Positions 12,655 through 63,500 of a stretch of 64,000 nt of DNA are shown in pieces (within the stretch, counting starts at the first letter, position 1; every line of letters begins with the position of its first letter). The position numbers and the translations under genes were made by a program. This DNA is from Haliotis cracherodii (lineage: Eukaryota): positions 29,140,001 to 29,204,000 of the forward strand of contig NW_027266265.1 in NCBI RefSeq assembly GCF_022045235.1, read 5' to 3'. Below the pieces are notes generated by a model that worked only from the letters and a program-made list of their open reading frames with translations, did no database searches and had not been told where the DNA came from.

Positions 12655-15600
12655 ATGAACACATTTATCATTTTGACTATTATAATTTCTCTACCTGCAT
12701 TATCACTGCAACAAAATGGTAAGTAACATACATGTATTAAATTAGAGATTATGAGAAGATCATTTTAACTTTATAGCAGTTCAGAATTAATACTTTTATT
12801 TATCAGTACTTAGCGTTTTATAATTTGATTTTATTATGCCTCAAACATTTTGATGGAACACAATAATTTAATTGATCATATCGTGTGATATTATTATGTA
12901 AAAGGCTTGCACGCTGTGATTTCCTTTAACTGTAACGTAGGGATGGAAAGATGTACGCTGTCATCGTTTGATGTTTATTTTAACCAACATGGACATGTGT
13001 GTATTGAAAAGATGTGCGCTGTACACCAACAACAGCAAGAATCCCATATACTAACAAGACAAATTTCAATTGTTCCGTCATGCTTTAATGAATATTGCTT
13101 GGTTTTATCTCAACCTTAATCTAAAGTATGCCACATACATGGATGCCTTACATCAATGAGCAAATACTAGCAATGCTGAATTTACTAATTACATTAATTG
13201 CTTTTTTCAGCTCCTTATACTTTTTGTAACACACTGTGTAACCTGATCAAAAGATGCTCACCTACCGCATCTTACTGTAGCGGCGCCAATGTGATCAGAC
13301 TATCGAGTTTATGCCGTTGCCAAGGTAAATATGTCATTCTAATGCTTGCTAAAATATACTTATAAGAATGATTAGAGAAAGAATGAACTTATTAGATAAA
13401 CGTTCAATATGAATAGATCAAGTTTGAAGAATTAGGTAATTTATTGTCGTCTTTATATTTCTGTTTTAAGTATTCTTTATCAATAAGATAAAGAAAACAC
13501 CTTAACAGATGTATGAGTAATTCTACCAGAAGGACATAGAACGTAGGGTATCTATTTTTTTAAATAGGAATTGAAACCAGTAAATCTTGAGGTATGCTAA
13601 ATGCATTCCCCGTCTTACTGATATTTCTTTACACTCAGATCGAAAAGATAATTTTTGGGTCCTTAATTTGGCTGGTATATAAAACACTGCAGTGCCTCCT
13701 AAACCTCATCTTCGCAACATGAAATTGAACATGGACGAAATAAAACTGAAAAGTAAATTAAAGCACCATCATGATGATGATATCTGATGTTCGTGAAGGG
13801 TAAATTATGTTGGTCCTCCATTAAGGCCAAGCTGATTGAGGTCAGTGTACAGTTGATCCTGGACAAAGAGTTTCTATAATTCATGAATGACAACATCCGC
13901 AAAGCGTAATAAAAGCGACAAAACCCTTGTCATAGTCATAAGATATAATCTGCGAAAAGAAGAGTCCACGGTAAGATTCCGTCTTATCATAATCATGTGA
14001 AGAACATATATATTATTGTCATTATTACATCTTTAAATGGATTATTATTTGGGTGGTCAAGTGATCGAAAGTGAGACGATGTGCTGTGCAGGTGAAGACT
14101 TTGTATCTTAGATGTCATTATCAGACACAGATCGAACATCAGACTGGCCCAGATGGACGTACTTGGTGATCTAGTGATCAATAGCCATTCTTTTCTTTAC
14201 AGAAGGTACAGGGATTGGCAATCCTCCTACAAGAAGGCCTACAAGAAGGCCTACAAGAACAACTACTACCACTACTACTACGACGACAACAACAACTCGG
14301 GCGCCATTTGTCAATAACCGTGAGGCAACATGTCGTTTATTTGATACACAATCAATAAATATCTATTTAGCAATTATCTACGCAACCTTAAGAAAACAGA
14401 TACATAATCCTTTTGTGAAAGTTCGAAAGTTAATGCTTTGTCATACGATGAAACCTTGTTAACTCGAACCTCTGAAACCATTAACTCGGTATACATGGTT
14501 AACTTAATGATCCCAGTAGGATCTCCATAAATCGATAAGTTGTCTAATATGAAAACTAAGTTTGTTTCAAACCACGGATAACTTGATATTGTGCGATGTA
14601 GTCAGAATTTTCTGAAACCTTAATACTTCATATACATGTATACATCTATTTGTAGAATGCGGCATCAGTGGAATTGCAAATCCTCAGGTATTTGTGGATT
14701 CCTTGCCTCGCATAGTGGGTGGGTATGACGCCCCAGAGACCTACTTTCCGTGGCAAGTGATTATCAAACCTGGTAGTGCCCGTTGTGGCGGCACAATCAT
14801 CAGCACAGACACTGTCATCACGGCTGCACACTGTGTGAAGTTAGTCATTTTGTACATAATTTGTCTCATGAAATTGTTTAAAAATGAATGTGGTTAGAAA
14901 CTGGTCAGGGTTACATATGAGTTTACATTTTGTTGATATATAATTACACACAGAGATGTTTCAACTCTGATACCTGAACAACCCAAATAGCTCTCGTACT
15001 CTTATTGTGTTTCTATTTTCTGTTTTAGATTTATGGAAATACATTTAATTTTAAATTTAGGACATCGTAGGACTTTATCATCAACACGGATTATCATATA
15101 CGATAAGGGTTGTTGATTCGTCACTGGAAATGGACAATGTTCCTCCTACAATGCATCACATAGATACATACATAGATACACACATAGATACATGCATGCA
15201 TGCATCCATCCATGCATCCATCCACCCCCCACNNNNNNNNNNNNNNNNNNNNNNNNNNNNNNNNNNNNNNNNNNNNNNNNNNNNNNNNNNNNNNNNNNNN
15301 NNNNNNNNNNNNNNNNNNNNNNNNNNNNNNNNNNNNNNNNNNNNNNNNNNNNNNNNNNNNNNNNNNNGTATTCGGTACATAAAATATATTTATGTATTCA
15401 TTTCAGCAATTTCCGAAATAATCCTCGCTCGGTTCAAGTAGGCCATGGTTCTGTTGACAGCAACTTCGCACAATACATAACAGCTTCCCAAATAATCGTA
15501 CATCCTGGCTACAGTCAATTCTCAGGTAATTTGTATTTGTCTTGTCTGTCTAAGAAGCACCAATATTTCTATCTTTCATTTAATTCTGACATGTGTGTAA

Positions 15601-17905
15601 AAATACAGACTAAGTTCAGAAGTAATAAAACAGTTTTTGTTTTTGCTTGTTTGGTAATATAATTGTATACTTGAATATTATCTCATTCTTGCCATAACCG
15701 ATGATCTTGCTGAAGCCCTTTTATAGTATATGGCACATCGAAGCAAATTCATTCTTGTTTGTTTGTCACAAGCCAAGATTTCTTCGGAAATTGTCAAAAT
15801 CATGAACGCCATCTTATAATTTGTAAGATATATGTAAAATTAGAATATTGCCTATTTCTTTGTTGTCGTATATTACCTCATAGTGTTTTAATTTTGGACA
15901 ATCTTTTTCAGCCCCGGACATTGCGATCATCAAGTTATCGAGGTCAATCACATATACAAGGAACAGCCGCCCAGCTTGTCTTCCTCGCAATAATCAAGCA
16001 GTCGACCCTAATCAGCTAGCTGTTGTCACCGGGTGGGGGATACTTCAAGGTGAGCATTTACCACCACCACATTTGCATTTAACGGGGAGTAGGGTCGTGC
16101 ACATTTACAGTCCCAGCACGTTTGTTAACTTGTGTTAATGGTATTTGATGATACCAGCTCAATTTTCACAGTGTGTTACCTTTTTCTCTTGACATGTGAT
16201 TGAACTTTCAGGAAATCAAGAGTTGGGATATCAGTCCAGCTGATTATGAATACTTCAATTACACAGTGACAATGTCTCAGTTTCACGGAACTAATTTCAA
16301 CGTCTTGATGTACGTGAGATAGTGGATAATAGGTCCTCATGAATATACTATGGGTTCGTTATCATCTTTTGGTAACAGGGATTCTATATCCTTTGGTTTT
16401 ACTAAGGTTTAAAATTAAAGGTTGCTTGTGGGAATATGAACACACACGCATAAAAACCGGACGGCAATGCAATGACTGATGTTTTTTGGAGCATAACAAA
16501 AACTTACTTGTGTAAAATCTGAGGCCATGATCATGAACAAAATGTTCGTCACTAGAAGCTTATTGTCAAGCTCACCTGGTCATAGGGTCTCCATCCTTCT
16601 TCTTAGTGGACAGAAAGTAAACCAAACTTGTCTGCAAACATCACAACATTGTTTAAGGCGAGGGAAGATAACTAACGGAACTAATATTAAACCGAACTTT
16701 TTACGGGACAAACCCAAGCTTGATTGAGTGATTTGGGTTAAACGCCGCCTTGAACAATAATTTAGATATATCACGGCGATGTGAGAGAAAAGCCGGCTGC
16801 TATTCAGGTCTCAGTCGTTTACTACTCTGGTGAAACACTCGAGCTCGTGAATGGGGCTGACGAGCCTATAAACATGATCGAGGCGAACCGGAATTCGAAC
16901 CCGCGATCATATCTTTATGGATTAGACATGGAACGCAACTTGAACAGCGAATTTTGGAGCCTTGGATGGGCCACCTGTGTGCCCCAAACCCCAAACCCCA
17001 GATAGTATCACCCGGAATTAAAATCGTCCTCACACAAGATGAATGATTCACACGATGGAGGGAAACTTTCCATGGTTTAACGATGTGCACATTCATCTAA
17101 CGTCGATCACTATCGATGCAGGCGCTACATTAAATTGTTTATACTCGGGCTGTATTGGTATAAGTGATTGAAAGAGCATTCATACACTTCAAAATGTGTG
17201 ATATTTGTACTCATGTACGTTCATGTTGTAGAGGGCGGGAGCAGAGTTCCCAATATTATGCAGTATGTTGCTGTCCCTATCGTTGACCAGGAAGAGTGTA
17301 ACAATGACTACTTCGGAGGAATCCGCGACGGCGAGTTCTGTGCAGGCTACGCCAAAGGTGGACGTGATGCATGCCAGGTGAGATAGTCAATACAGGCGTC
17401 AGTACAAAACCAAAATGGTTCCACTTTGATAAAATTATATATTTTTTAAAATTTATTTTACTTTTTATTTTTTCTCGTTTTTTAAACTTTCTGCTTATTT
17501 GTTGCGAATTAAGAATTTGTCTTGTTACTTCGAGTATTTTCTTGTTGTTTCTTGTATTTAAAATTCTAAATTTCGAATTATTTAATTAGATTGAGTCCAT
17601 TCTACGATTCCAACTATATGATAAGCATGTGTTTATGAATCACGCACAGGTGTAATGGAATGTATCTAATAAACCCAAATATTAAGTAGAAGGAAAGTAC
17701 AAACGAAAGTTTATTTTTGAATTAATGTTTTTGTCCTTCTCTTCAGGGCGATTCCGGTGGTGCCCTTGTCATGCCAAGTCCGTCGGGCAGAACCTGGGAA
17801 CTTATCGGCGTGGTGTCCAGGGGAACTGGATGTGCCAGACCAAACAAGCCGGGCATATATGCCAGGGTGCCAAACTATGTGTCATGGATACAACAGAACC
17901 TGTAA
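12655..17905 (+). CDS. SP1: secreted trypsin-like S1A serine protease with 6-Cys N-terminal module and Thr-rich linker (about 346 aa, 8 exons)
   Basis: Exons 12655-12718 ([18 protein letters not shown] signal), 13211-13324 (Cys module), 14203-14319 (PTRR/poly-T linker), 14656-14839 (CG..PR|IVGG..TAAHC), 15407-15525, 15912-16049 (DIAII..GWG), 17232-17377 (GRDACQ), 17747-17905 (GDSGG..WIQQNL*). All GT-AG with compatible phases, total 1041 nt. AATAAA at 18005. Confidence 0.93.
15233..15367. other. Assembly gap (N run) inside SP1 intron 4
   Basis: Run of Ns following a CATC/CATA microsatellite. Confidence 1.
16724..16985 (-). mobile_element. SINE family C (diverged)
   Basis: GGCGAACCGGAATTCGAACCC and ACAGCGAATT..GGGCCACCTGTGCCCC. 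Additional diverged copies at about 470-700 (+) and 30755-31003 (-). Confidence 0.65.
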
Positions 17906-27346: not shown

Positions 27347-30300
27347 TTAAACCCTAATTGAGTTTATCCACTCGACATGCTGAGGTACGAAGGCATACAC
27401 TCCTGGAAAGCCTGGTTTAGCACACCCTTCTGCCACTGATACCACGCCGTACAAAACCCATTTATCTCCTTCCGGGCAAAAAAGGGGTCCACCAGAGTCT
27501 CCCTGAAAAGAAAATTGCATGTAATAAGAGATAAGAGATAAACATGAAGTTTTGATATTTTACGGGTGTGTGCTAGCTTATCGTATGTTCAGCATGTGGG
27601 TGTGTATAATGTTTCATCATCCGAGCTCCCCACCCATCACAGTGTTATACAGGTGATGCTATTAACATGTGGATCTCCAACTTGCATACCAAGGATACTT
27701 GGATGAAAAACTCAAGCAGAAGAACAGAAGGATTATTTTTTTCATCAGATGAACCAATGAACCACCGCTTCCTGGGCGTAAGAAAGGAAGTGAATAGGTG
27801 AATAACGTACTTGAAAGTATACTTTTTAAAAATTTATCTTAAACAACAGTTGGCCAAAACAAAAATCAAACTTGTGCAAATCCGGTTTGTTGGACAGGGC
27901 TTGACATGACCAGCCAATTGGTAGGACCGGGCCCACCCTACCACCTGTATAGGTGAAGCAAGGGTTGAATTGGTGTATTGGGCACGGCTTTGGTTACCTA
28001 ATTTAGTCGTCTCTTATGACCAACAACTGGGAGCCGGAGACAAATTTTACACTGAACTCCCACGGAGTCCTCTGTTTAGTCGCCTCTTACTACCAGCAGT
28101 GGGGTGCCGGGGACACATTCTGTGTCGAGGCCCCTACGGGGGTAGTCAATTGAATGGGGATGATTTAGTCACACAATGCATACAATAATGTGCTCCCATG
28201 ACAACCAAACTGTCGTGTGAGTAGAACGCCGGATACAAGTAAATTAATCTGCCAAATGTTACTCAAACTAATTCTCCACATATGTAGTCATACAAAATTC
28301 TTTCGTCATGTCGAAAATCATGATTGTTACGGGTATGTCAGATTCCAAGGGCATGCAAGTCGTGGTCCAGAGTTGTCATTTAGGCGTTTCAGGATCCGTT
28401 GTCATGGATCTTAACCATATTCGCCAAGTACATGCATGTGATGCTTGATCTATTGTTACCCATGCAGGTGGCCTGACAACAACCTCACTATGAGTATTCC
28501 TCCGACTTTAAAGTATCATCCCTTGATACCATTGAAATACTGCTCAAATGGGCTCAAATCCAATTCACTCCCTTATTCACAACTGACCTTGCAAGCGTCT
28601 ACTCCCCCGTCTCTGTAGTACCCAGCGCACAACTGCCTGTTGGACACTAGAATGTAGTCGTTGTCTGCATATGACCTTTGACATAGGTCAAGGGGAACCA
28701 AAGGTACGTATGCCTTCTGTAGAATATCAGGAAATGTGAAACCGCCATCTGGAACATATAACGTCTAATATGACCAATATGTTAATAGAAACAGATTCCA
28801 TAGGGCGTAAAAGGTAAAATAGTGATGACAATTATATGAATGGATCACTGATAATCATTGATGACCACTGATGTTTGCGAAAAGGGTAAGCATGTCCCCC
28901 CTCTACTGGCACCACCCGCCATTCACACAATTTGATTAAGAAAGTAAGTATTTATTGTTTGTTGCCTAAACCCTCGGCAATACCCCTGCAATTGACGACA
29001 ACCTGTATACAAACGGTTCTACATGAGGCAATGCAGTGATTGATATTATGAACAATCATCAACACCTTCAAGGTACGACGGATGGACCATTGGCCGAATT
29101 TCATATCTGGGTTCGTGTTCGACTTATTAACAATTTATTAACTATTCATTCGCCAAATTATTGTAATCATATTTTAGAAGAATACTGAAAAAGGCATTGC
29201 CACCAGCATATGAGATATAAATTTAGATTATTTGTGCAATAAGTTGATAGTAATTGAACGGCCAAACAAATCAAAATCCTAAATATTAGAATATTGGTAG
29301 ATATGTTAAGTCAATGTTTTTGCAATGATCTATGGGCGTTTCTGTTTTCTTATAAGCAGCAGAATCGCTGCACTTCTAGACAAAAGACATAATTCAAACT
29401 TAACATATCGTTTATAGTTTTAACAATTTCAGTAAATGCGCTATCGGCTCACTAGATTTTCTTACATGAAAATTGTGCGAGTGGCGGGTACTACCAGTAG
29501 GGCAGGACATGCTTACCCTTTTCGCGCACACCTGGTGTCATCATTGAGTTTCAGTCATCCTTTCCTATACTTTTCACCGCTGGTTTGCCTTTTGCGTCCA
29601 ATGGAATCTGTGTCGATAGATAATCAAGACTGATTATTCTCTGGAGTTGACTGCTATATTTCCAAAATTTCAAACAGATATTTCAGCCATTGGCATATCA
29701 AGCTTGGCATCAAGGCAGAGTTTTAGAAGGCACATGGAAACTCCAATGCTCTACGAAAATGAATTGTCCCATATCAACTGAGTGGCCCAGGAAGATTAAG
29801 AGGTGTGTACATTGCCTGACGTACCTAGCTGAGTCCCCCATCCTGTGATGAGGCAACCAGAGCCTGTTGAGTAGGAAGTGCTCGGCTCAGGTAGACACAC
29901 ACTTCTTAAATTTGTAGAGGCATTCAGAGGGAGATCCTTACTGAGCCTCACAATGGCGATATCATTGTCCTCTGAAAACATAGCAAAGGTATATCTGTAT
30001 CAACAAATAATAAACAGGGGATATTTCTTGTGAAATATGATGTATCGCTTATCGAGTGACGTAAAAAAGGAGATATATTGACGAGTTGATGTATCCTGGA
30101 GTGGTAATAACTCCTTTTCCACTTCTCGAGATGAGAGATAAATCATATTTCACTAAACACATGAAATCTCGTATTTATTATATACTTCATTTGTTGTTGA
30201 CAGTGTTTCTATAAACAAATTAACCAAAACAAGTAGAACGCAAAATCTAAATTCCCCCTACTATACACATTGACCTTTTCACACATTGCTTCCCGCAAGC

Positions 30301-33300
30301 AAACAATATTGCTATGTTAAAATAATCAAAAATATTAAAAAACGCCACAAAATACTTGAATCAAGTTTTTAAAATTTACGTACTTTGGAGATTTTGTTTC
30401 GCACCTTCTGAATTAATGAACACTCATTTTCTGTTCGAGGTATTGAATCTAACATAATAATTTACATGGCGTCGAACGAAACCAAGTTGAAGATCTCTCA
30501 GCGATGCATTTAAAGCATATAGCTGTTCAACTAGGCAGAGTTTCAAACAAATAACACATAAGAAGAACTGTAAAACAGTTTCACTGTCAACACAGAAGTT
30601 TAATTGTTCCGAAGCCCGGCTGCAGTTCACTGCAGTGAACAAATGACTAGTCTGTCACTGCTGTGAATATATCACTTTACTAAACTTTAGAAATCTCAAT
30701 CTTTCACACTTAGGTGTATCATAAAGTACTCCATGCTTTGTTGTATAAATGTTCTTAAACGTCCATTACTACGGCTGTGCACATGTATATCATGCTGTAT
30801 AACCAGGATTCCCGTTATATCACGGCGTGTCACGTTAATGAAGCAGGAAAGCCCGACGGTTTTATCACTATGGTGAAACCCATGAACATGTGTATGGTGC
30901 TGACAAACCTACAGACTTAATCGGACAAACCTGGATTCGAACCCACGATTATAGGTTTCTACCACGAAATATGTGGCTCTTCAAACGACTGGCTTTTCGT
31001 GCCACAAAACAAATGAATAAGTATATTTGAGTGATTAATAAACGACAGGATCGTATTCTAATACTAATACATTAATAAATAATATATACCAAAAAATGAC
31101 TTTTTCGCAAATGTGAAGTCAGACTTACTGTTCGTTATGTTGTATAGTGGGTGTGTGTCGATTCTCTCGGCAGTTATGTTAACGAGGCTAGTTCTTTTGA
31201 TGGAACCATAACCTACAGTCAGCCTTTGAGGGTTGTCTGCAAGGGATCTAAAATACATAAAGAGAGAGAGAACAATTAATTCCAACAAGTGATTCTCTTT
31301 CCAGTTGTAATGAATGACGATACTGAAAGGTAATTGGCTTAACTGTAAAGGGAGTCATGTGAGAAAAGTGCCCGTTCTTTATAAACCGAAACTTAAGCTG
31401 GGTTTTTAATAAAATAATAGCGATCATCACGTACCCCACACAATGAGATGCAATAACAATAATAACGATCATCGCGTGCCCCACACAATGAGATGCAGTA
31501 ACAAAAAATACGATCATCACGTATCCCACACAATGAGATGCAGTAACAATAATAACTATCATCACGTACCCCACACAATGAGACGGAATAACAATAATAA
31601 CGATCATCACGTGCCCCGCACAATGAGATGTAGTAACAATGATAACGACCATCACATACCCCACACAATGAGATGCAGTAACAATAATAACGATCATCAC
31701 GTAAACACATTACGATTCAGTCACGTAAATAACGATCTCAACATACCTCACACAATGCGCGGCAGTCACAACGTGACGTCTATCAATTATGGAACCGGCG
31801 CACAATCTTAAGGTGACCGTTTCTTCCAGATAGACTGTCCAGGGGAACTCCCTCTCTTCGGCATCAATGCCTCCAACAATTCGGGGCATAGCATAGCGAG
31901 ACGCGCTGCCTGTCTTTGAACTTTCGCCACAAGGAGGATCTAGAAAAATAAATAAGTTAATAAAAAACACTAAAATAAATATATAAACATCTCTGCATGA
32001 TCACATGTCCCGTTGTGTAAATGAATCTATGTTTTGGGAATCACGAGAAAGTATCAATCGGTATCATACGAAAATGTTTTTGACGGACAGTACACATAGT
32101 GCTTGTATTATTGATAGTGTACATAAAATGCCGGGAACGTGGGTCAGACTGATTCCACTTTACCCCTTGTTACAGCCGATCAAATGAAGATAGGGCTTCG
32201 TTCGTGCTGCTGGTGTGTTATGGTATCTCGTTGATTTCAGTGACTTGTTTGTTGAGTCCAAATTAAATATGTACAGACTGACATCGTAGAGCAGTAACAG
32301 TCTGTGATGGATGCTTAATAAAACAAGGATATGAAGTCACTTGTGTGAGTTTAAAAGCATGAATCAATTTGATGTTTACATCTTCTTTAAATTTTTATGC
32401 TATTACCGTCTACTTATACACATCATTAAACACACATTTTGGCGCTCCCTGTCGTAAATGTACAGATATAATGTGAGTATACACTTATATTATGAGAATA
32501 AACAATAAAATCACATAAGTTCCATCCGATACACAGCAGATGTCTTTTTTTCTGGAAACAACTGACAGTGTCTGATGCTCCTGCATAAAGCTCATACCTA
32601 TTAAACATTTCTTATCAAAGATGTAGACCTGTATGATTGTTGTTATTGCACAACAGATCGCTTGCACAATGGGACATTTTTGCGTTGGAGTACGATTGTT
32701 CAAAGGTGCAGGTAACTAGATGGCTGTGAAGAAGATTCATTTTTTTTTATTCAAACGTGAAACAGATTTGAATAGCAAAATATGAATAGTCTTTTATTAC
32801 ATAATACAACATTTGATGGACTTGCTTAACTATGTCGTAAAGATAATTTGATCCAATGTTACCATTTTTACGTCTGATGAGATCCTCTGTACACTTGTAA
32901 TAATAGAACAGGAAGACGCATACGGGGGACATGGTAAAGCATCTCTGGAACTGACTGCACATAAGAGCTTGTTGTTCCTGGGCAGCTGGAAATAAGAAAA
33001 ATTTCGAAAATACGACATCGAATGCACACAAAATGCATGTCGTTTCAATAAATCACTTCCACTGCAATTGTACATGCACTATGTGTTTAGCAACGAAGAC
33101 ATTATCACAGTATGGGTTATCCTAGTGGTTAAAGCATTTGTTCGTCAGGACGGTTGCCAGGTTGCGAATCTGTACACGAATACATCATGTAATGCTCATT
33201 TGTAGTGATTTTAAGGTGGAGGGAATGAGTGAATGAGTGAGTGAATGTGGTTTTTAGCAATATTCCAGCAATATCACGGCGGGGGACACCAGAAATGGGC

Positions 33301-35265
33301 TTCACACATTGCACCCATGTCGGGAATCGAACCCGGGTCTTCGGCGTAACGAGCGAACGCTTTCACCACCAGGCTACCCGATCGCACCGATTTACTACAC
33401 AATATACACAATATACATACATGTATAATTATGCATTACATGTGAGTGTTTATAGTATTGATTAAGTAAAACCTACCAGAATTTGAATGACAATATGGAT
33501 AGATAAAAGAATGTCTTCATTTATTTCAGATGGTAGACCTTAACATCCGTGAAGTACTGTAGCAATAGCATATCATCTAATGTAACTATATATTGATTCT
33601 AATTTGACCAGTACTGTAAGGCCACAGGCCCATAATGCATTTCGATCGGCCTGTTTTTGGCGTTTCCGAGCATGCTGCTATATTGCAGTTATTGCAATCT
33701 TTTTCAGAGGTTCAGCAATAATGTTCGCAGTCATACAGTATTACATTAATAATACCGAAGATCAATAGAATAATAGTTAGAGAAGTAATGATGAATTTCT
33801 TCAAAATACACAAGTAGCAGCCAGGACAAAGTAGCATATTTGTTTTTTTACACGCCATAGTCTAATAAACGTTTCCGGGGAATGTTTCGATGTGAATGGT
33901 GATGTAAGATCGAAAAGCACACTTTACAGACCATTATGTATATTATTGCATACAAGCAGTTTGTACAAACATTTTCAGAAGTTCATGTTCGCAGAAATAC
34001 ATTATTGTATTATTAATACAGGGGTCAGTAGAATGACAGTTGCAAAAGTAATTATGAATTTCTTATTTTTGAGCCTTACATAAGCAGGGCCCATGGCAGT
34101 GTGTATTTGCAAGCCACAATTTACTAACTATGAAACGTAGTTTGTCAACATGATGGGCGGTGCTAGCCCATATATCACCTTCACGTGAAGTCTACTCCCT
34201 GGCACTGACTTGAGCGGTGGGTGTTACCGGTAGAGCAGAACCCGTTCCCCCTTTTTGCGAATACATGTTGTATTCACTATTTTTCAGTCATCCATTCATA
34301 TAATTTTCATCCCTATTTTGCCTTATCCGCCCCATGGAATATTTCGGCAGATTTCGAGACTAATTATGCGCTAGCTGTAACATTTTGGATATGTAGGAGT
34401 ATTGCAAACGTCGGCTGACTCAAACCATGTTGAATCATATCATTCAAATATTTGTGAACATACAACCGAATGCATATGTCACCGTTCTTTCTTTTTTAGA
34501 ATGTTACTGTCCAATGCTACTTAATGTAACTACAATGCAATTGTAATATCATCGTTAATCGATGGTAATGTACCTTTGGTTGATCAAATACACACTGTCG
34601 ATTTAATTTATTTTCCCAGTTAGAAATGATATACTAGTACAGGAATTACTTTTAGATGAGTCAATTTCGGCTTCGCAACGATATTTAGACTATTACGCGT
34701 TGTTTCATTTAAAGCGTTGAAAACTCCCACAAAGATTCAATACTAATGCTATTATAGCTATCACACGTGCCTTTATATATACCTATAACTCACTTCATTA
34801 ATACAGTACATATTCTAGGAATACGTATCACGTCAGGTAACAAGTACGCATACACTCACAGAAGTTGTTAAATATCCGAATATTTGTATCCGACGATGAT
34901 TATCTCTACAAACCATTGAGTGTCAGTGTATGAAAAATGTTACAAATCAACATCAAACAATTACCAAACAAAAGTGGCATACGCCATATCCATAATCCAA
35001 GTTACTATTGGCTACTGGTAATATTAACTGCACCAAACATCGCCAGTGTCAAAAGGTGATGTAATGTCAATGACCTTAGGAATTAGAAAAAATAACTTGG
35101 AATTCATGTATACGTGAAACAGAGGTGATGGACCTTATAGAGACCTTTTACATAATTATATAGACATGTGTATAAAAAACTTAAAGCATACTCACCTATT
35201 TGTGTAGAAAAACATACTAATACCAACAAAAGGAGTAGCTGTCCTTGTCGCACGCCAGCTGCCAT
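27347..35265 (-). CDS. SP2: secreted trypsin-like S1A serine protease with 4-Cys N-terminal module (about 322 aa, 7 exons)
   Basis: Exons 35265-35196 ([23 protein letters not shown]), 32985-32863 (Cys module), 31939-31747 (CG..PR|IVGG..TAAHC), 31247-31129, 29971-29825 (NDIAIV..GWG), 28748-28588 (GVDACK), 27502-27347 ([16 protein letters not shown]). Phases consistent, total 969 nt. Minus-strand AATAAA at about 27264. Confidence 0.92.
30007..30183. repeat. Imperfect palindromic element in an SP2 intron
   Basis: AATAATAAAC..GTGAAATATGAT ... ATCATATTTCAC..GTATTTATTAT. Confidence 0.5.
31415..31746 (-). repeat. 45-bp intronic minisatellite derived from the SP2 His57 exon/intron junction
   Basis: Six full units plus one degenerate unit of (minus strand) TTATTATTGTTACTGCATCTCATTGTGTGGGGTACGTGATGATCG. 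Confidence 0.9.
33225..33388 (-). mobile_element. tRNA-derived SINE family B
   Basis: Reverse complement is nearly identical to 58294-58465. Confidence 0.88.
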
Positions 35266-40800: not shown

Positions 40801-42444
40801 TTAAACCCAACTCATTCTTCTTCATTAGGGATAAACTTCCCGACTTCCATCCATTCACGCTAGTAGATATAGAATACTTTTCAAAGCGGGGTATACCCAA
40901 ACCACTCACTTACTCTCTGACATTAGCTGCCGTACCTGACACAGTGTGCTGCCGTCAGTATAGAGTTCTTGCTGATAATGGACGCCCCGCACTCATATTT
41001 TCTGCGTCCTTGTTTGTAAAGGTGAACTGACCAGGGAAACTCCCTGTCTAAAGCTTCTGTACCACCAACTATCCGGAGCCCAGGGTATCGAGATGCATTG
41101 CCTGTCACCGAGCTGAATCCACAGGAAGGAGTGGGGTCTGGAAATATAAAGAGTCACATACCATGTTAATTAAAGTCATGAAGTGAGTGAAAACTATTTC
41201 AGCTACATCTCGGCACAAAGTGGGAGGAGAGGCCGAAGTGATACAGGTCAAAAACGTTCACAACTTTGGTTAAATCCACGAGCACGGGAATGGTGCTGAC
41301 AAACCTAGAAACATAATCAGGGCGAACCGGGATTTGAACCAACAATCATAGGTTTCATGGCGAGCCAAAGGGACGCAACTCTGCACAGCGAATTGCAGCG
41401 CCTTAGACGACTGGGCCAACCCCTATGTTCCATTGACATACATGCACTAAGACGGCTATATGTGGCAACAACATTGTTCAAGTCATACCTGTGCATCGGT
41501 AGTAAAACAACAGCAGAAAGCAGAGGGGAGAAATTTCGGAACATTTCTGGAAATGAAGACACATACTGGCTCTGACGTCTTCAGTGGCTGGAAATATAAA
41601 ACATATTTCAAGAGATGAACGAAAACTAGTGTATCGCCAAGCACTTGTCTATTTCTTACAAGTACACACTGCATGCACTTACCAATGCAGCAGTGAGACA
41701 TTTATTACAACTACCCGTATGTAAGAAGATGATAATGATATAACAAACATATAACCAATTTTCATTATACATTGAAATTCCAGTACCTTATATATGTTTG
41801 TGGAAAAGTTGACCACACTTAGGATTAGGTTACAAATGGATTGTATACTCCCCAGAGAGTTAAGAATGCAAATTGAATGTACACTGATACAGGTAATTAT
41901 TGTACACGATATGGTCATCACAAAGTAGACAAAAACCTACTACTGAGGTATTATAAGTTTTCATCCATAAATGTTTTGTCTACTTTATCATACTACAAAT
42001 TCTATGGTCATGCTTTGTTTCAAATGCACATTTGATTATCAGTTCCTCCCACTTCAATTATGCGTTTTCATACTCAAATCAGAAGGAGTGTTGCCATTTG
42101 AATGTAAACTACAACTTTCAGTTCTAGTTAAGAGGCATCCCGGATAGATATGGTCGCCGATTATATCGTATGCCTGCTGCAAAAGTAGGCTTAATGTGTG
42201 TCATATACATGTGCTCCTGATGTCAACCATTGGTTGACCTTGTCCAGATCTGATTATTTGCTGACCTGCGTTATACAGCTGTACTATTGCCTTCAGAGGA
42301 GTTAAACAATATTAGTACATTGAAATAGGATTATATTTATTCTTAAATCTAAATAATGTATATTAATAACTCACCTGCAAATGTAGAAATATACACGAGC
42401 GTCAACAAGACGCACATTGTTATTTGATATAGACCGAATGCCAT
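37866..42444 (-). CDS. SP3: secreted trypsin-like S1A serine protease lacking the Cys module (about 291 aa, 7 exons including a probable 21-nt micro-exon)
   Basis: Exons 42444-42375 (MAFGLYQITMCVLLTLVYISTFA), 41587-41567 (micro-exon, less certain), 41137-40936 (CG..LR|IVGG..TAAHC), 40163-40045, 39122-38976 (NDVAVV..GWG), 38367-38210 (GKDACN), 38024-37866 ([17 protein letters not shown]). Minus-strand AATAAA at about 37833. Confidence 0.9.
39754..39901. repeat. 21-bp minisatellite, 7 units
   Basis: (TTGTTGTGTACACATAACTTG)n variants. Confidence 0.9.
41178..41422 (-). mobile_element. SINE family C
   Basis: Matches 50843-51123, e.g. GGTGCTGACAAACCTAGAAACATAATC and GCGCCTTAGACGACTGGGCC. Confidence 0.8.
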
Positions 42445-46800: not shown

Positions 46801-49048
46801 TACAATCAATTAGTGATAACATGCCTCAATGTTCAGAGAAGTTCTAAGATAAATGGTGTGCGAGAGGCACGATACATGGGACACGTATCAATGACAGAAG
46901 TCCGCCATGACCATGGAGTAGCCAATCACGGATCTGGAATTCGATCCCACGAATATCATTCATACCAGTTTTCTGAATTGTGTTTCTCACCCTCAGGCAT
47001 GTAGGAAATCCAGGTGAGCAGTAGCGTATGTACTTTTTCAAACCCACTTAATTGCCTATATATTTATAGATACTACATGTGGGTCTCCCATTAACGCTAA
47101 GTGTCAACTAGTTGTCATATATTGATAACACATATTTTGCAGTTAATGCGGGACACTGGTAGCACAGTCGTCTAAGGCGCCGCAGGTCGCTGTTCAGAGT
47201 TACGTCCCTTGGACACACCAGAAACCTACGATTGAATCCCGGTTCGCCCCGATTATGTTTCTAGGTCTGTCAGCACGATACCCATGGTGGTAGTTTTTTA
47301 CCAAAATGGTTAACGTCAAAGACCTGCATCACTTCGGACTGTCTTTCCACATTAAGCTGACCCGTCGTGATAACTGGAATACTGTTCAAAGCGACGTTAA
47401 ACCCAACTGACTCATTCATAAATGTCATGTTCACATGTACTTGTATTAATTATTTGGGTAATATTTATAAAGCATGTTTTCTATTGACTTAATGATATCA
47501 TTATCTTTGAAATAAAATTTGCACTATTAATTTACTTAAATCAACCTCATTCTCTACAGTCAATACTTTTTAGTTTAATAATTAATAAAAGTACATATAT
47601 ATTTGTGCACTGGTCAGAAATACACGTGTCAGATACCTGACACAATGGGCGGCCGTGAGGATGACATCTTTTCTGATGATGGAGCCACCACACATGCCGA
47701 TCAAAGATTCCTCATCTTCCACGTTAACAGTCCATGGGAACTCTCTCTCCACTGCGTCTACACCGCCGACGACGCGCGGCATAGCGTACAGAGACGCCCT
47801 TCCAGTCACGCGGCTCACCCCACACGCCGGCTCTAAGTAAAACCAGTCAAATGGCTTAAAACAATTTCAATATATTTGCTGACGAATGCTATTCAAAACT
47901 AAGTAAGGATACGAATTTATGGAACTGATATATTGTTTCAGTACAATGCTATTATTTAAAAGTGAAGTTCCCATTTCACATGTCCAACTTATAATTTTTT
48001 AACAGTTATGTATGTAAAGTTATACCTTTATTAAGGGTAATCATAATAATAAGAATTTTATAAAAAAAATAGCATATCCACGGTAAAACTTTAGTCAGGT
48101 AAATGTGAATACGATTAAATTTAATTCTCTAGACATATTATCAAACTGAGAACACAGGTTTGAGTAAACCTTTTGATGATAATTATATCAACTGAATTTG
48201 TAAAGCATAATTTCATGTCAACTATTAAATATACGTAGGCACATTAGGTGAGTGACATGATATCGTGTTTGGAATTAAGACATTAATACAAGAAAATGCT
48301 TTGGGGGGTAAATCATGAGATAAATAAGTCACCAAATAAATGGAAATTCTGACCCCTAGCCTAAAATGGGCCATGGAATTAATGCGGGTATCCTTACTAT
48401 TGACAATTTAAAAACACTCTCTTATAATTCGTCAGCCACCATATACTAAGGGAAACTAACCGATGTCAATAGTATAGCTTTAATGCATAAATACGTTACC
48501 AGTATTTCGCGCAATGTTAAAATCAGTACAGTTGTAGTATCCAAACAGCACCGGACAGAGAAGAGAAGTGTCGAAACAATTCAGTAAAGACACACAGAAA
48601 CGTGCTCTTCTTTGCGCAGCTGAAATATAAATGATTAAATATCATATGATGAAATAATAATTAATAATGTTTAAACCCGCTATAACACGGCAATATTACT
48701 GCTGGTGTCCTCAGGTCTATGCTTCACACGATCTAACCCGGGGCTCGACAGGACGAAATAATGCATTGACATCTGCATGTACATGTTGGCTACTTGAACG
48801 TCAAATTAAAAGTGAACAATGAGACTCAATTGTCGGGAGAACATAATGACATCATGTTGGTTAAATATTTCTACCCAGCAACATGTTAACAACATTCTCA
48901 ACATAAAGATTTTTTCTCTCAAAATGAAAGCATGTTGTGTTCATTGTAAATACAAAACACATTTAGGCTTACCTCCACACCAGCACAAGAAGCTCAAAAC
49001 AGTTACACGGAAAATCAGACCTCTTCTTATATTCCAAATCATTGTCAT
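43891..49048 (-). CDS. SP4: secreted trypsin-like S1A serine protease with 4-Cys N-terminal module (about 322 aa, 7 coding exons)
   Basis: Exons 49048-48973 ([25 protein letters not shown]), 48619-48500 (Cys module), 47832-47637 (CG..PR|VVGG..TAAHC), 46590-46472, 45247-45107 (NDIAVV..GWG), 44576-44416 (GVDACT), 44046-43891 ([16 protein letters not shown]). Total 969 nt. Confidence 0.92.
47150..47417 (+). mobile_element. SINE family C
   Basis: Aligns along its length with the reverse complement of 50843-51123. Confidence 0.82.
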
Positions 49049-52260: not shown

Positions 52261-55200
52261 ATGCGTATCCTTCTTGTCATCAGCCTATTGTTCTGCATAT
52301 GCCATTGTTTTCTTGCACAAGGAGTTGGAGGTAGGTGGATGTTATAATGCATTAATTTTCTTTTGATATGTAATGGCATGTAATAGAGCTACAGTATAAA
52401 ATATGCTCTCAGGTTTATACAATTTTTCAACGTGAAATCGTTTAGCTTTTGTTGTTCAAAATCAATATAAATATATTTTTTCTGCTTTCAAATGATATGA
52501 TTTTTGTGCTGTACGTTGAACAATGTATGAGTGCTACTTGCTGGATAGCAAAGCAGTTTCAAATGTGTTTCATTTCATGTTCATGTGATCGTCTTTGAAA
52601 AATAGTAATTTTATCGATCTTTAATCAAAACGTTGCGTCGGTCCTATAGAATTGCTAATTAAGTAAGGCTTGAACAATTCATCTGCTTCTTTAATGCTAT
52701 TTATTAATATATAAAGATTTGTAAGGAAATAAGTATTTGCTAATTTGCTAAGGAAATCATGTTTACCTCAACAATGAACGATCTGTTTATTTAGTTTTTA
52801 TTTCGTGAAGATTTATGCAAGATTCTGACCGGTCTCCTTCATGATGCGGATTCCCAGCAACTCTATGACCTACTTGACTGTGATAAGATGCGTAAGTTCA
52901 TGCATATCAGCCCAACATATGAAAGATAATATCCATATTTGCAAAAAACTGTGATAAGATGCGTAAGTTCATGCATATCAGCCCAACATATGAAAGATAA
53001 TATCCATATTTGCAAAAAAATAAAGGCGAATAGTTTATATCTGATTTTTAGGTCATGTTGTTATTTAACAGTGCAAAATATGTATTTAAAAAAATATTTA
53101 ACTTTTTTTTATAAATGCTTTTGAATGAACACGTATTTGGTTTGTATGAAAAGTACTTTTGTTTGTTTTAGCATTTCATAGACCACATGTAACAACAACA
53201 GAATAGGTACGTCCTTGTCCATTTCATTTTCATCATGCATTGCATTGGATCACATAATATATTAAAGCATACCTTTATTCCAGTATCTTCATGCGGTACA
53301 GTGCTGAACAGAAAGTGCCCACACCCATGGGTAGTTATTGTTCGTGATAAGAAAAGGAAGGCTGAAATGTGTGTTGGAACACTAATAGACGAGAGGCATA
53401 TCATCACTGCTGCCCATTGCTTCAGTCAAAGGTAGGAAAATGAAATACTATTCTTAAAGGTGGACAGGGGTTGGTTAATTGGCAGTCCTAGCAAATTTGA
53501 ATCTCGTCCCTCAGATAATAGTTTCTGGGCAGAACATGTGCACTTACAGTAGAGCGTAGTCGCCATTTAACATTTGTTTAAGTTATGTTTAGGATACGAG
53601 TTGGTTGTGTCCCATGTAATACCCAGCCATATGTCTATTATCAAGCATAATCATATCTAGATTTGTAAATAAAGTTGTCCGATTCATGAATTCATTTATG
53701 ATGAACTATGTTAAAGGATAGTACGTTTGTTTTGTCATCAACATGATTTAGTTATCACACACATCACTATCACAAATTCACTAAATCTGACAAAAATCAG
53801 TATACATTTTACGAATACTATAAATATAATTTTGGGATGGACAGATCGTGTTGCCTGCATATGAAAACAGAAAAAATCGAAAAAAAATATCTGATTGTCA
53901 AGTAGCCTTCGTGTTATAACCAATACATGTTGACTACTGAGCTGCACAAATGTTTTCAACAAGCCCCCCACCTCTAATGGTTTAACCCCTCTGAAGTTAA
54001 CACCATGACGCCATTTGTTTTTGTATCATATGCTTGACGCTTCACGATTGACCGACGCTGTTCACAAGATGGTCCTGATATTGCGAGACAGGCATATTTC
54101 ATCGAATATAGGAACATGTACTTGTAAGTTCTAAACTCGTGAAGATTTTCTCAAGAGTTCTAAATTTGTTACAATTTTATATAGTGTCAAATTTAATATC
54201 ATGGAAACCCAATAGCCATTTTTTGTCAAAGAAATAACAACGACAAACACTACATTCCAAATTATCTTTACAAGGTATTTCCTCGCTGACGATGTGCATG
54301 TGGGTATGGGTTCACAAAAGGCTGGAGAGCTCACCTACATAGACTTGGAGTCCTTTACGCTTCATCCTAAATATAGAAACACTGGTTTGGCAAGTACGTT
54401 CTTACAAAACCATTTCCATAATCAATTAAATCTCTGCTGAAAACATATGGAATATAAAGAAAATCAATTAAGTCATCATTACTAAAAGGGTTGTTGTGCC
54501 TGTATCATTTTCAGGACACGATGTCGCAGTTCTCACCTTGAAGAAGAAGGTTGGGTTTACGCCCTGTATTCAGCCAATATGTATACCCGGAACAGCAACC
54601 AATCCTGAAAAGGGAGAACTGGTCACAATCGTAGGATTTGGGCGTAAGGGCGTTTTATTTTTTCCCTATATCAAACCATTTTGTCTATTTTTCAATTCTA
54701 AACAGTTGGGGGGAAAAAGCACACATACCAATGTTTGATGGTGGCTAGAAATGAGACAAACAACAAATGGTTATGCGATTGGGATGTATTTGATACGGAT
54801 ATCACATTTTGCCCCTGAAATTTACAGTGTCTCGGTTTCTGTTTTCTAGCCTATTAACTTTTGAATAACATTTCTAATTTTTGGGTCGAATCCAATTTTT
54901 GAAGCGTTTACCTTGATTTGCCCGGTAACTTGTGTAATATTGGTATGTAGTGTGACTTTTCATAGAGTTTAATTGGTGAAAAACCCCACAGTATATTGTA
55001 GATGTCAATGTGATGTCCTTTTTTGTTGTCTTACAACTTTTAATATGCCAGTTTCCTTTGATGTTTTAAGGTTTCTGGAACAAACAAAGGGCAAGATTGC
55101 AGGCAACTGTGCTACCAGTAATAAGCCGTGAGGAGTGTGTGAGCATCTACCCGGAAGTATCGGCACTACAACATTCGATCTGCGCTGGATTGTGGTCTAG

Positions 55201-55882
55201 CATATCTTCTTCGTCAGTTTGTCATGTAAGGAATTTATATTCCATGATTAATCGCACAGTCTAAGGCGCTGCAATTCGCTGTGCAGAGTTCGGTACGCCA
55301 GAAACTTATGATTGTGGATTCGAATCCCGGTTCGCCTTGATTATGTTTTTAGTTTTGTCAGCACAATATCCGAGTTTGTGGGTTTCGCCTTAGTGGAAAC
55401 CTGCATCACTTCGGACTTTCTTCCCACATTAATCTGACACGCCGTGATATAACTGGAATACTGTTCTGAACGGCGTTAAACCCATCTTACTCATTCATAA
55501 ATGTCAAGTTCACATGTACTTAATTTATTATTTTGGTAATTCTTATTGAACAAATTATCAGTTTGCTTAATAATATCATTATCGATAAAACAGAACTTAC
55601 AATTTACACCATTAATTTACTTTTCAAAGGGGAATTGAATTTAATTGAATTTTCAGTTGATAGAAATTATTAAATTTAAAATACAACTTGCACTATAAAT
55701 GATCTCACAATTTTCAGGGAAATTCAGGAGCCCCAATGATGCTTCAACGAGAATATAAGTGGTTTCTGTACGCTGTCAGCACATCACACAGGAGTTGCGA
55801 AGAAGCTGTTTCTGTGTACATAGACATTCCTCACTATGCCACCTGGATCAACAGTGTTAAAGAACATGAACAGCTCTTTTGA
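52261..55882 (+). CDS. SP5: atypical secreted S1A protease or protease homolog (triad intact, no IVGG, GNSGA instead of GDSGG; about 288 aa, 7 exons)
   Basis: Exons 52261-52330 (MRILLVISLLFCICHCFLAQG), 52811-52891 (2-Cys module), 53284-53431 (SCG..HPW..TAAHC), 54275-54393 (119 nt as in paralogs), 54515-54643 (HDVAVL..GFG), 55071-55225, 55718-55882 (GNSGAP..WINSVKEHEQLF*). Open frame of 867 nt. AATAAA at 55906. Confidence 0.85.
52877..53018 (+). repeat. 71-bp tandem duplication spanning the SP5 exon-2 donor site
   Basis: ACTGTGATAAGATGCGTAAGTTCATGCATATC...TTTGCAAAAA twice. Confidence 0.92.
55253..55497 (+). mobile_element. SINE family C
   Basis: CAGTCTAAGGCGCTGC..GATTCGAATCCCGGTTCGCC..GGCGTTAAACCC. 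Confidence 0.8.
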
Positions 55883-57787: not shown

Positions 57788-57816
57788 GACACACACACGC
57801 ACACGCACACACACAC

Positions 57817-57871
<55 letters not shown>
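57788..57871. repeat. Compound (CA)n/(TA)n microsatellite
   Basis: Seen directly. Confidence 0.95.
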
Positions 57872-57874
<3 letters not shown>

Positions 57875-60577: not shown

Positions 60578-63500
60578 ATGTGGACGAAATCTGCACTTTT
60601 ACTACTTGTACTATGTGCCTTATTCCTGACAACCGACAGCGCCAGTAAGTGTTTGTCATTTTTTTGAATTATGAATAATATATATGCTCGCGCTACAATG
60701 ATTAGTTTTTTGGAATGGCAAAGTATAGCTGCCTTGTAAAAAAAGCTTTGTTTCATGTTTCCATTTATAATCACAATACTTTGTCATCATATCAAGGCGA
60801 GGTATCACGTATTGTTCATTTGATTTTTGTTAATGAGCAAGAATTAGTAACTTCATTGGGTATAGTGTTCCACAGGTTAATCGTATCCGGAAGAAATGAT
60901 TTAGCATAGGTCTGGGTTCTACATTGTATTATGTGTATGTTAGATCTATTTCTAAGGTTATAATTGATATTACCAGAGACTGGACTTGGAATGAGATCGT
61001 TGAGATATACAGGTTAAATACTGTTTTTCATTTCGTAAAATGTAGTCAATTTGAAGCGGTGTCGTGGTTCTTTGAAGGACTGAAAGTTTGTTTCGTTATA
61101 AAATTTAACATGACTGGTACCCCGAACCGCCCCACAAATAGTTCTCAATGCGTCCAAATGTAAATTATCATATATACATGTGTATATTCCCCTGTATGCA
61201 TGATGCATGCGATTGTAAATCATGGAATGATACTATGTTCAGTTCATTGAGATATATATCTCCATTACATATGCATGGATTTTAAAAATTGCAAATAATG
61301 TTATGAATTCTGTCGTATTGTTTGGCAACATTAGAAAAGCTTTCACTGCTCAACATTGCTTTTGTGAGACACTTATGTAAAGTGAATGATCGCTTGCACG
61401 TTATAGATATGGAGGTAACAATGTTCACTCAAGTCTTGCACTGTGTGGTTTCATGTCACTGTAATGTTCCGTCATATTACAGACCTATGTGGCTTCTGTG
61501 ATGTTTTAAAGCAGTGCGTAAGCTTCCCCGCCTGCAAACAGTACTGGGACATATGCAAGTGTGAAGGTATTTAAGGCTTTAAATTTCATATTACGCAAAT
61601 ACAAGGTAGCTTCACATAGCATGTTGTATTCATAAATAAAGCTGCTTCATGTTCAAAGCCTACATTGACATGTTCGCATGAATCATTTCTTGACCCATAT
61701 CTTTTTTGTTTAACTTCATTTGCAATAGTAACAATGACTATAAAATATTAATAAATGAGGTAAATGTCAAAAATATGTTTCACTACGACACTTCGGATAT
61801 ATGCATATTTAAGGATGTCTCGAAAATATGGAGTGTATAATGAAGTAACTGTTTGAACTTTTCCAAGCTATACCCACGGACATCCAATGTGGCGTTGCTG
61901 AATCTCCTCCCATACCTAGGATATCCACCTACATCGTTGGTGGACAGGACGTTGGCGAGTGCGAGTTGCCATGGACCGTAGCGCTGTTCACCAAGGGTTC
62001 CTTGCGTTGTGGAGGCGCCATCATCGACGACAGGCACATCATCAGTGCAGCTCACTGCCTCATGTTAGTATAGCTTCTTTGGCTTTTATTTTCTCGAATG
62101 AGTGGGTGAATGAGTGATTAAATATGCTTTCAGGGGAGAAGTATGACGTCGGTGGATACCTTAACTGGACGTCACAACTGTGTCCATTTGAGTAATCGAC
62201 CCAACAACGCCTTAACCACCAGGCTACATTTGTATGCCAAATATGTAAAGAATGTTATTTTCAGTTACATTTGGACCAACAAATACCATTTAGACTATGA
62301 GATAGTCTGATATGACAGCTTGATATTTAAACAGACTGTAACACGCTTGGTGAATGATGTGATTCAACGCCACGTATAAAAGTATCTTATTTATATACAT
62401 GTAACAGATGTACAAACCATTTAGCAAATCGCTGATACTTGTTGGTATGATTTATGAAGAAATGTGAATGTGCTTCGCGCACAACTTCATATCACATTCA
62501 AGTGTTGGTATCCAAGAATGGAATTATATATGATAGATATCAATTATATAGTGTACAGAGAAAACATATACATGTTTTATTTTCACATAGGGGAATAAGG
62601 AATGCCAAAGATGTAATTGTGGGGCTCGGATCCTCAGACAGACGCCGAACGCGAAATGCAACAGTATCAGCCTTCAGCATGCATCCAGAGCATTGGTCAG
62701 GTGTGTGAGAAATATTCTCCCATGTGCATGTATCAATATTTTATTCCACTTGTTGAGTTGACTAAAATGTTTACATTTCTGTAAACTGAATACCTCCCTG
62801 TTACTGAATACCTCCCGTTTCAAGTCGAATAGGATAAAGTACATATGTAAAAGTATATCTTCTGAAAATAGACTTAGCCAATCACAATTCTTAGTGTTGT
62901 AAAAGCCCTCTGAATGTCACCAGTGAGTTATCAACCATCAAGCATGGCTTCATTATAAAAAACAAATATCCATCTATACCTTTATGTTAGAATAAGAAGC
63001 CGTCTCTTTGAAAATCTTCATGTGAACAATCAATATCATGGTTTTTTTCAGATGTCAACGATATTGTAATTTTAAGACTAAAAGAACCAATCAAGTTTAG
63101 CAAATGCATACGTCCGATTTGCCTTCCACCTCAAGACCATCAGTACAAACCCATGCAGAAATGCATTGTTGCTGGGTGGGGACTTACATCAGGTGAGTGT
63201 CATACCAAGCGAGAATTTTCCGTTTATGTAAAGCAATATACTTCCAGATCCAACTTCAGACGTCTACAAGTATAAATTGCTTAGATACTTTAGAGCGTGT
63301 ACAAAGTTATTCAAAGTTCACGGAACACTCATTCCTTGTTAATAATTGTGAAAGATTTGTCAAGGATAAAGGTCTGTATAAAAATCCAAACGACAAACAT
63401 CAAGTCTTTGAATGGCATTTAGAACATACTGCCCACTTAGGAATTGACTACAGACAGCTTGTTTTCATTTACCGTTCATAAGACATACAATCATTTTCAC

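Follow-up and report, generated by a model that had tools for sequence, protein, structure and literature searches.

Modular trypsin-like zymogens drive clotting, complement and the insect immune cascades, in which small N-terminal modules set both binding and firing. The clip domain closes its disulfides in the order 1-5, 2-4, 3-6 and the ShKT domain in the order 1-6, 2-4, 3-5; the disulfide topology of chymotrypsin is also well established, including the Cys1-Cys122 tether of chymotrypsinogen. To our knowledge, almost nothing has been described about the N-terminal modules of molluscan proteases. Two-helix disulfide-stapled peptides are known as plant alpha-hairpinins, scorpion kappa-hefutoxin and OmTx, and the conotoxins flf14a and vil14a, all with the motif CX3C-Xn-CX3C (PMC7191063). 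Here we analysed a stretch of 64,000 nucleotides of the black abalone Haliotis cracherodii (RefSeq assembly GCF_022045235.1, contig NW_027266265.1, positions 29,140,001 to 29,204,000; hereafter the window), in which a first-pass annotation had pointed to an unclassified cysteine-rich segment on the second exon of several protease paralogs. These paralogs, SP1 to SP7, form a family arranged in tandem and encode secreted zymogens of the trypsin type (S1A); six of them lie in the window and the seventh in its flank. The explanation that we favour, and that we hold to be somewhat better than an even bet as a whole, is that an autonomous mini-domain peculiar to abalones is encoded by their exon 2, a disulfide-stapled two-helix hairpin carried by the zymogens as a tethered appendage.

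The zymogen genes and their second exon

Motif scans in all six frames found six chymotrypsin-fold protease genes in the window:

about 12655-17902, plus strand, SP1 gene
27350-35265, minus strand, SP2 gene
37869-42444, minus strand, SP3 gene
43894-49048, minus strand, SP4 gene
from 52261, plus strand, SP5 gene
from 60578, plus strand, SP6 gene, continuing beyond the window end

The seventh paralog, SP7, lies 4.8 kb beyond the window end. The module is carried by all seven genes of the cluster, in each case on an exon bordered by an AG acceptor and a GT donor, with a length divisible by 3 and phase 1-1, that is, as a cassette of 27-41 codons directly after the signal-peptide exon. This short upstream exon ends in phase 1 in each gene; it was identified through RefSeq N-termini for SP2, SP3 and SP4 and through transcripts for SP6, and is predicted for SP1, SP5 and SP7. 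The exon following the module opens with CG..., and the (I/V)VGG of the new N-terminus comes 13-19 residues later; the Cys matching this putative tether Cys stands at the ...CLP... position of the catalytic domain. The N-terminal exons are as follows:

12655..12718, plus strand, SP1 exon 1 coding part, predicted signal peptide with phase 1 end (Met, hydrophobic core and gtaagt donor; prediction only)
13211..13324, plus strand, SP1 exon 2, six-Cys module C-x3-C-x5-C-x6-C-x11-C-x-C, phase 1-1, 114 nt (50.8 bits in the own-genome profile search)
14203..14319, plus strand, SP1 linker exon rich in Thr, Pro and Arg, phase 1-1, 117 nt (AG/GT borders, in frame with exon 2; prediction only)
14656..14839, plus strand, SP1 exon with tether Cys (CG...), R|IVGG and catalytic His (motif reading)
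15233..15367, no strand, assembly gap in an SP1 intron (run of N)
35196..35265, minus strand, SP2 exon 1 coding part, signal peptide (N-terminus identical to that of RefSeq P0004; gtgagt donor)
32863..32985, minus strand, SP2 exon 2, four-Cys module C-x5-C-x6-C-x8-C, 123 nt (100% match to P0004 residues 24-64)
31747..31939, minus strand, SP2 exon with tether Cys, R|IVGG and His (motif reading)
42375..42444, minus strand, SP3 exon 1 coding part, signal peptide (N-terminus identical to that of P0008, the ortholog in H. rufescens)
41489..41587, minus strand, SP3 exon 2, four-Cys module (59.2 bits in the profile search)
40936..41137, minus strand, SP3 exon with tether Cys, R|IVGG and His (motif reading)
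48973..49048, minus strand, SP4 exon 1 coding part, signal peptide (a single mismatch to P0007, the ortholog in H. rufescens; gtaagc donor)
48500..48619, minus strand, SP4 exon 2, four-Cys module, 120 nt (sequence and profile)
47637..47832, minus strand, SP4 exon with tether Cys, R|VVGG and His (motif reading)
52261..52330, plus strand, SP5 exon 1 coding part, predicted signal peptide (prediction only)
52811..52891, plus strand, SP5 exon 2, degenerate module with two Cys, best aligned as C2 and C6, 81 nt (genomic sequence)
53284..53431, plus strand, SP5 exon with tether Cys and His, lacking IVGG (motif reading)
60578..60644, plus strand, SP6 exon 1 coding part, signal peptide (transcript contigs end the exon at 60644 and join it to 61483)
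61483..61566, plus strand, SP6 exon 2, six-Cys module C-x2-C-x5-C-x5-C-x6-C-x-C, 84 nt (both splice joints in transcript contigs of four organisms)
61868..62063, plus strand, SP6 exon with tether Cys, Y|IVGG and His (transcript contigs and motif reading)
L006:1484-1585 (G000:C2:29208815-29208916), beyond the window, SP7 exon 2, six-Cys module C-x3-C-x5-C-x6-C-x6-C-x-C, the cleanest six-Cys version (profile search)

The first-pass annotation had listed five paralogs with such an exon 2 (SP1, SP2, SP4, SP5 and SP6, in window order); all five exons are present where it placed them, in phase 1-1 and with AG/GT borders, and the peptides and Cys counts that it gave (6, 4, 4, 2 and 6) are correct, but it had missed the copies of SP3, on the minus strand, and SP7. 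Thus, SP1, SP6 and SP7 have the six-Cys form, SP2, SP3 and SP4 the four-Cys form, with the Cys spacing of SP3 identical to that of SP2 and SP4, and SP5 the two-Cys form. SP2, SP3 and SP4 are one another's closest relatives, and their nearest six-Cys copy is SP7; single-exon trees of the His and Ser exons are poorly resolved, with SP5 on a very long branch.

The S1A nature of the host genes is supported by exons with the TAAHC, DIA and GDSGG motifs, by PF00089 on the RefSeq orthologs, by the exon-by-exon match of SP2 to a H. cracherodii RefSeq protein (82-100% per BLAST piece) and by Foldseek, which matched the host protein to the catalytic domains of enteropeptidase and kallikrein with E 1e-28. 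The catalytic motifs and Asp189 are kept in all members but SP5, which indicates a trypsin-like specificity for the others. The activation site reads R|IVGG in SP1, SP2, SP3 and SP7, R|VVGG in SP4 and Y|IVGG in SP6, and is lost in SP5. In SP6 the Ser motif reads TDSGGP instead of GDSGGP (L014:4362-4380, window-equivalent 64362-64380), in agreement with the loose ends of the transcripts, and Thr replaces Gly193 of the oxyanion hole; judged from these residues and from Tyr|IVGG, SP6 may be a weakened enzyme or a differently activated one. SP5, whose His exon has no IVGG, whose Ser motif reads GNSGAP (55715-55861, plus strand) and which also lacks Cys201, looks like a decayed or non-catalytic member, in line with its degenerate two-Cys module.

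The linker exon of SP1 encodes a mucin-like stretch that separates the module from the protease part, and it is the only exon of its kind in the window. The assembly gap of SP1 falls after the His exon (end 14839) and 39 nt ahead of the next acceptor (exon start 15407), and the closest module exon is 1.9 kb away from it. Since the SP1 reading agrees with the paralogs at every residue across the gap-spanning splice, the gap hides no coding sequence. Simple repeats border the gap, and long trinucleotide and GT-type microsatellites were seen in and after the last SP6 intron (L014:4119-4340 and 4634-4982; window-equivalent 64119-64340 and 64634-64982).

Predicted fold and cysteine pairing

AlphaFold models of the full-length RefSeq SP2 protein (35-row alignment, mean pLDDT 87.5) showed helices at residues 26-41, 44-52 and 57-64, with pLDDT 89-91 over residues 31-50; helix 1 contains C33 and C39, helix 2 contains C46, and C55 follows directly after helix 2. 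When the six-Cys exon of SP7 was modelled alone (11 rows), helices 2-12 and 17-25 were obtained, separated by a four-residue loop, with a mean pLDDT of 85 (82-85 over the five models). No strand was present in either prediction. The helical mini-domain suggested by the first-pass annotation was therefore recovered as a helix-loop-helix in both SP2 (pLDDT about 90) and SP7 (pLDDT 85), and Foldseek with a 33-residue model gave no significant match to a known domain (all matches E >= 6.7); a wide search with VIA-align returned only generic antiparallel helical hairpins (best Z 3.2). On these models, we consider it likely, if well short of certain, that the module is an antiparallel helical hairpin and not a clip or defensin fold.

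Within the SP2 catalytic domain, all cysteines find their canonical S1A partners, and the linker Cys matches the Cys1-Cys122 pair, so that the module cysteines are left to pair among themselves. The four-Cys forms align without gaps to SP7 as C2, C3, C4 and C6. Since cysteines six residues apart in one helix cannot bond, and crossed pairs clash with an antiparallel hairpin, the nested arrangement C3-C4, C2-C6 is indicated; in the model of the four-Cys and reduced forms, C2-C6 would most likely be the outer pair and C3-C4 the one next to the loop. SP5 had been aligned gap-free to SP6 with only C2 and C6 kept, and explicit scoring bears this out: that offset has a BLOSUM62 score of 28, or 13 without the Cys columns, by far the best, against 1 for the next offset and -7 for the alternative anchored at the exon start. 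A seven-row MAFFT alignment in which SP5 kept C1 and C5 was overruled by this scoring. The retention of C2 and C6 in SP5 agrees with nested pairing but not with the pattern of clip.

It had also been noted that SP2 and SP4 lost C1 and C5 together. The joint loss is seen, and SP3 shares it, but three separate events are unlikely: because SP2, SP3 and SP4 are closest kin and four species agree in the four-Cys state, their sequences are most simply explained by a single loss of both cysteines, probably in their common ancestor. For the six-Cys forms, the connectivity C1-C5, C2-C6, C3-C4 had been proposed, of which the last two pairs fit the four-Cys forms and C2-C6 also SP5, but C1-C5 is not separable from a ladder 1-6/2-5/3-4. 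In fact, C1-C5 follows in these forms only if the connectivity has been conserved, and C2 could have re-paired with C6 after losing C1 and C5. On the predicted SP7 hairpin, the position sums are 30 for C1-C6, 32 for C2-C5 and 31 for C3-C4, compared with 28 for C1-C5 and 34 for C2-C6, and the nearly constant sums of the ladder fit the hairpin geometry better. We give the two schemes equal weight, each a little short of an even chance, and leave a smaller share to some other pairing. The ancestral module probably had three disulfides, as in SP1, SP6 and SP7, with two left in the SP2/SP3/SP4 branch and one in SP5.

A different origin has to be weighed here. In the protease paralogs downstream of the cluster, this slot is taken by beta-defensin-like modules, C-x6-C-x3/4-C-x12/13-C-x6/7-CC, again encoded by phase 1-1 exons, and a Thr-rich linker often comes next; at least seven such six-Cys exons were seen on downstream protease genes at G000:C2:29215900-29257700, some followed by Thr-rich stretches, and several of these defensin-type genes have weak or no matches for the His and Ser motif exons. 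The abalone module could be a strongly diverged clip or beta-defensin-type domain, beta-rich and paired 1-5/2-4/3-6, derived from the defensin-like exon of its neighbours. The shared gene slot and chromosomal neighbourhood, a phase 1-1 exon that starts one to three residues ahead of the first Cys, and the Thr-rich linker exon of SP1 all speak for such an origin, as does the co-loss of C1 and C5, which is what a 1-5 pair predicts. Nevertheless, we consider it improbable. Comparison of the module profile with the neighbouring defensin-like modules by hhalign gave a probability of 0.1%, with no profile similarity; its cysteines are spaced differently and form no CC doublet; AlphaFold gives an all-helical structure with good confidence in two independent contexts; and C2 and C6, kept by SP5, are not partners in the clip pattern, so that, together with the hairpin geometry, they argue against the pairs 2-4 and 3-6. 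No clip match was found in Pfam either, as reported below. The lack of a Pfam match also agrees with the earlier separation of the module from ShKT (PF01549).

Distribution, expression and conservation

Profile searches of the abalone's own genome (1.18 Gb assembly), starting from a profile of the five exons first listed, which also picked up SP3 and SP7, recovered only the seven copies of the cluster. The six cluster copies in the profile scored E < 1e-8 and every match outside the cluster E > 0.2, and a second search with an improved profile gave the same picture. When the 32-position module profile was run against 1.84 billion proteins, each standing for a 50% cluster, only two proteins, both from Haliotis, and a single chance match were obtained. 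In the other searches single exons or database proteins were used as queries: the module region of the SP2 protein, used in a word search, found Haliotis orthologs only, and a full-length search found Haliotis paralogs with 47-55% identity over 99% of the length, followed by proteins with 42% identity that is confined to the protease domain; beyond Haliotis, even the closest relatives can be aligned in this domain only. Within the reach of these searches, the module is restricted to one cluster of the genome and to Haliotis.

No known family could be assigned, as the first-pass annotation had supposed. A Pfam-A hmmscan with the five module peptides, at E values up to 10, returned no family at threshold and no clip or ShKT match (PF10645, with 17 bits against a cutoff of 25, and PF22332 were discarded as sub-threshold chance matches); a profile search of the PDB sequences gave no match, and the RefSeq orthologs carry PF00089 alone, with no PF12032. 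The ESM Atlas gave nothing for the SP2 module; for SP7 it gave leads to small disulfide toxins with scores of 0.78-0.86, which stay below 0.9 and do not reach the level at which shuffled sequences are excluded. Literature searches on Haliotis cysteine-rich propeptides, on molluscan clip domains and on the RefSeq product names yielded nothing. The module therefore appears to be an unclassified, abalone-only type, within a wider kind that is already known, that is, S1A zymogens with a small disulfide-rich N-terminal module.

The leads to toxins bear on the question whether the hairpin might be cut free as a bioactive peptide, antimicrobial or toxin-like, with the protease gene acting as its carrier. 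They point that way, although they stay under the level that excludes shuffled sequences, and the predicted fold class is shared with alpha-hairpinins and kappa-hefutoxins, of which the defining CX3C...CX3C motif is absent. A dibasic stretch lies between the module and the tether Cys of the SP2 orthologs (RRK; KR in H. asinina; window 32864-32900, orthologs P0001 and P0005), a possible convertase site that could release the module. On the other hand, this site is absent from SP3, SP6 and SP7, SP4 has a single Arg, and several modules are hydrophobic or aromatic and not cationic. On balance, a released peptide seems to us very improbable.

Transcription of the module was followed in contigs from four public runs of four organisms, placed on SP6. 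The runs are only presumed to be RNA; the contigs were taken as transcripts because the genome has no intron-less copy of the module exon. They show GT..AG joints at 60644->61483, 61566->61868, 62063->62591, 62696->63048 and 63189->63770, with loose ends entering the last exon, and a single contig of 994 nt covers SP6 exons 1 to 6. The SP6 exons read from the DNA are thus used in transcripts: the joints of SP6 exons 1, 2 and 3 were found exactly as predicted, in all four organisms. In addition, the RefSeq proteins of H. cracherodii, H. rufescens, H. asinina and H. rubra carry the SP2/SP3/SP4-type module right after the signal peptide. Contigs of all four runs also cover two stretches of SP6 introns (L014:818-993 and 3584-3717; window 60818-60993 and 63584-63717) with about 90-95% likeness, before running into unlike sequence; they are probably copies of a dispersed repeat transcribed elsewhere.

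The four cysteines are invariant in the SP2/SP3/SP4-type RefSeq proteins of these four Haliotis species, and the same holds, across the three paralog lines, for the aromatic positions and for the Leu that follows C4 by three residues. Among the four organisms of the SP6 contigs, exon 2 shows one synonymous difference and no amino-acid change, compared with 4-9 differences in the 199-nt His exon.

Proposed role and comparison with known systems

These zymogen genes share one plan, with a signal peptide on exon 1, the phase 1-1 module on exon 2 and then an exon that carries the tether Cys and, except in SP5, the activation site. We propose that the module folds as two antiparallel helices with a loop of 2-4 residues between them and disulfides as staples, and that the tether Cys forms its bond with Cys122 in the catalytic domain. 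Since this Cys lies downstream of the module, the hairpin would stay covalently on the enzyme after the activation cleavage, retained in a light chain that would count some 45-60 residues, and more in SP1 by virtue of its linker exon. There it could serve as a small docking, targeting or zymogen-regulating appendage on the active enzyme, a use suggested by the invariant cysteines, the nearly invariant Leu and the aromatic positions. Five members are activated after Arg, and self- or mutual activation is therefore possible.

Several points weigh against this proposal. The fold comes from AlphaFold with a shallow, 11-row alignment of closely related species, and Val, Phe and Tyr, which are favourable to strands as well, abound in the second helix; it is because of these two points that our confidence in the hairpin was not raised above the level given earlier. 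SP1 has a 5-residue insertion after C4, a poor fit to a simple hairpin. The transcript evidence is direct for SP6, runs via RefSeq models for SP2, SP3 and SP4, and gives way to genomic prediction for SP1, SP5 and SP7. The module evolves faster than the catalytic domain (68% vs 85% identity between the SP2 orthologs of H. cracherodii and H. asinina), and it is decayed in SP5. Moreover, in one run (X1) a contig joins SP6 exon 1 straight to exon 3, in frame (60644->61868; L014 644->1868), with a depth of 233 compared with 699 for the form that includes the module; the joint is supported by 22 letters on one side and by a loose end with the first 8 letters of exon 3. This thin evidence suggests an in-frame SP6 isoform without the module, which may consequently be dispensable.

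The faster evolution, the degenerate SP5 copy and the skipped exon, together with the different lengths and Cys numbers of the paralogs, are also what would be seen if the segment were a lengthened, fast-drifting activation peptide, a disulfide-tied spacer that is tolerated without a binding or regulatory role of its own. Such a spacer is hard to reconcile with the invariance of the four cysteines, the Leu and the aromatic residues over four species and three paralog lines, with an SP6 exon 2 free of amino-acid changes in four organisms, and with a module retained in seven of seven genes despite several rounds of duplication; we rate it as unlikely, although not negligibly so. A bolder version of the tethered hairpin would have an orphan three-disulfide hairpin exon born in the abalone lineage, replacing a defensin-type module and now acting as the recognition or docking module of a mollusc-specific extracellular protease cascade with mutual R|IVGG activation, an independent invention of the clip role; we regard this as decidedly unlikely.

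The locus offers a well-delimited case of module exchange via symmetric exons, in which, within about 130 kb, sister genes hold either a defensin-like module or an unrelated predicted hairpin, apparently restricted to the genus, in the same slot. It also provides a compact, synthesisable domain of 30 residues with natural variants of three, two and one disulfides, and thus a test system for the birth, simplification and loss of a disulfide-rich mini-domain. Should the module prove to direct protease activation or targeting in abalone immunity or digestion, this would have a bearing on disease work in an endangered and farmed group.

The arthropod clip-domain proteases (PF12032 and PF00089) are alike in having a small disulfide-rich module N-terminal to a trypsin-fold zymogen, in forming tandem gene families, in being activated after Arg and in the expectation that the module stays on the catalytic chain via an interchain disulfide. 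In abalone, the position N-terminal to an S1A zymogen is shown by gene models and transcripts, and the tether is deduced from the linker Cys and the Cys122-equivalent. By contrast, the abalone module has no sequence match to clip and is predicted to be an all-helical hairpin, whereas clip has an alpha/beta fold with a central beta-sheet; its Cys spacing ends in CxC, and its reduced forms point to nested pairs and not to 2-4/3-6; it measures about 30 residues, compared with 37-55 for clip, and is known only in Haliotis. A clip-like functional role, which the first-pass annotation gave as possible, is suggested by position in the protein only.

The neighbouring defensin-like modules share with it the chromosomal region, the slot after the signal exon and the phase 1-1 design, and SP1 also has their Thr-rich linker exon, so that, as far as the genomic sequence can tell, it is built like these neighbours of the defensin type, except for its first module. 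They differ in spacing from C-x3-C-x5-C-x6-C-x6-C-x-C, and the abalone hairpin is predicted to be helical rather than beta. Peptides of the alpha-hairpinin type resemble it in the predicted helix-loop-helix of about 30 residues and in the nested pairs C1-C4/C2-C3, which correspond to C2-C6/C3-C4 as deduced here. In place of CX3C-Xn-CX3C, the abalone forms have C-x5-C...C-x8-C with four cysteines and C-x3-C-x5-C...C-x6-C-x-C with six, the ancestral one would have a third disulfide, and the module forms part of a protease zymogen, as a domain with an exon to itself, and is not a free peptide; sequence relation was not detectable, and the structure search gave generic hairpins only. The activation peptide of chymotrypsinogen, held by Cys1-Cys122, is matched in abalone by CG... 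with (I/V)VGG 13-19 residues later and by the Cys at ...CLP..., but it has nothing upstream of its Cys, where the abalone proteins carry a module of 26-40 residues, predicted to be folded, followed in SP1 by the Thr-rich linker. Although it fails membership in the clip, neighbouring defensin-like and ShKT classes, the abalone module holds the position of a clip domain.

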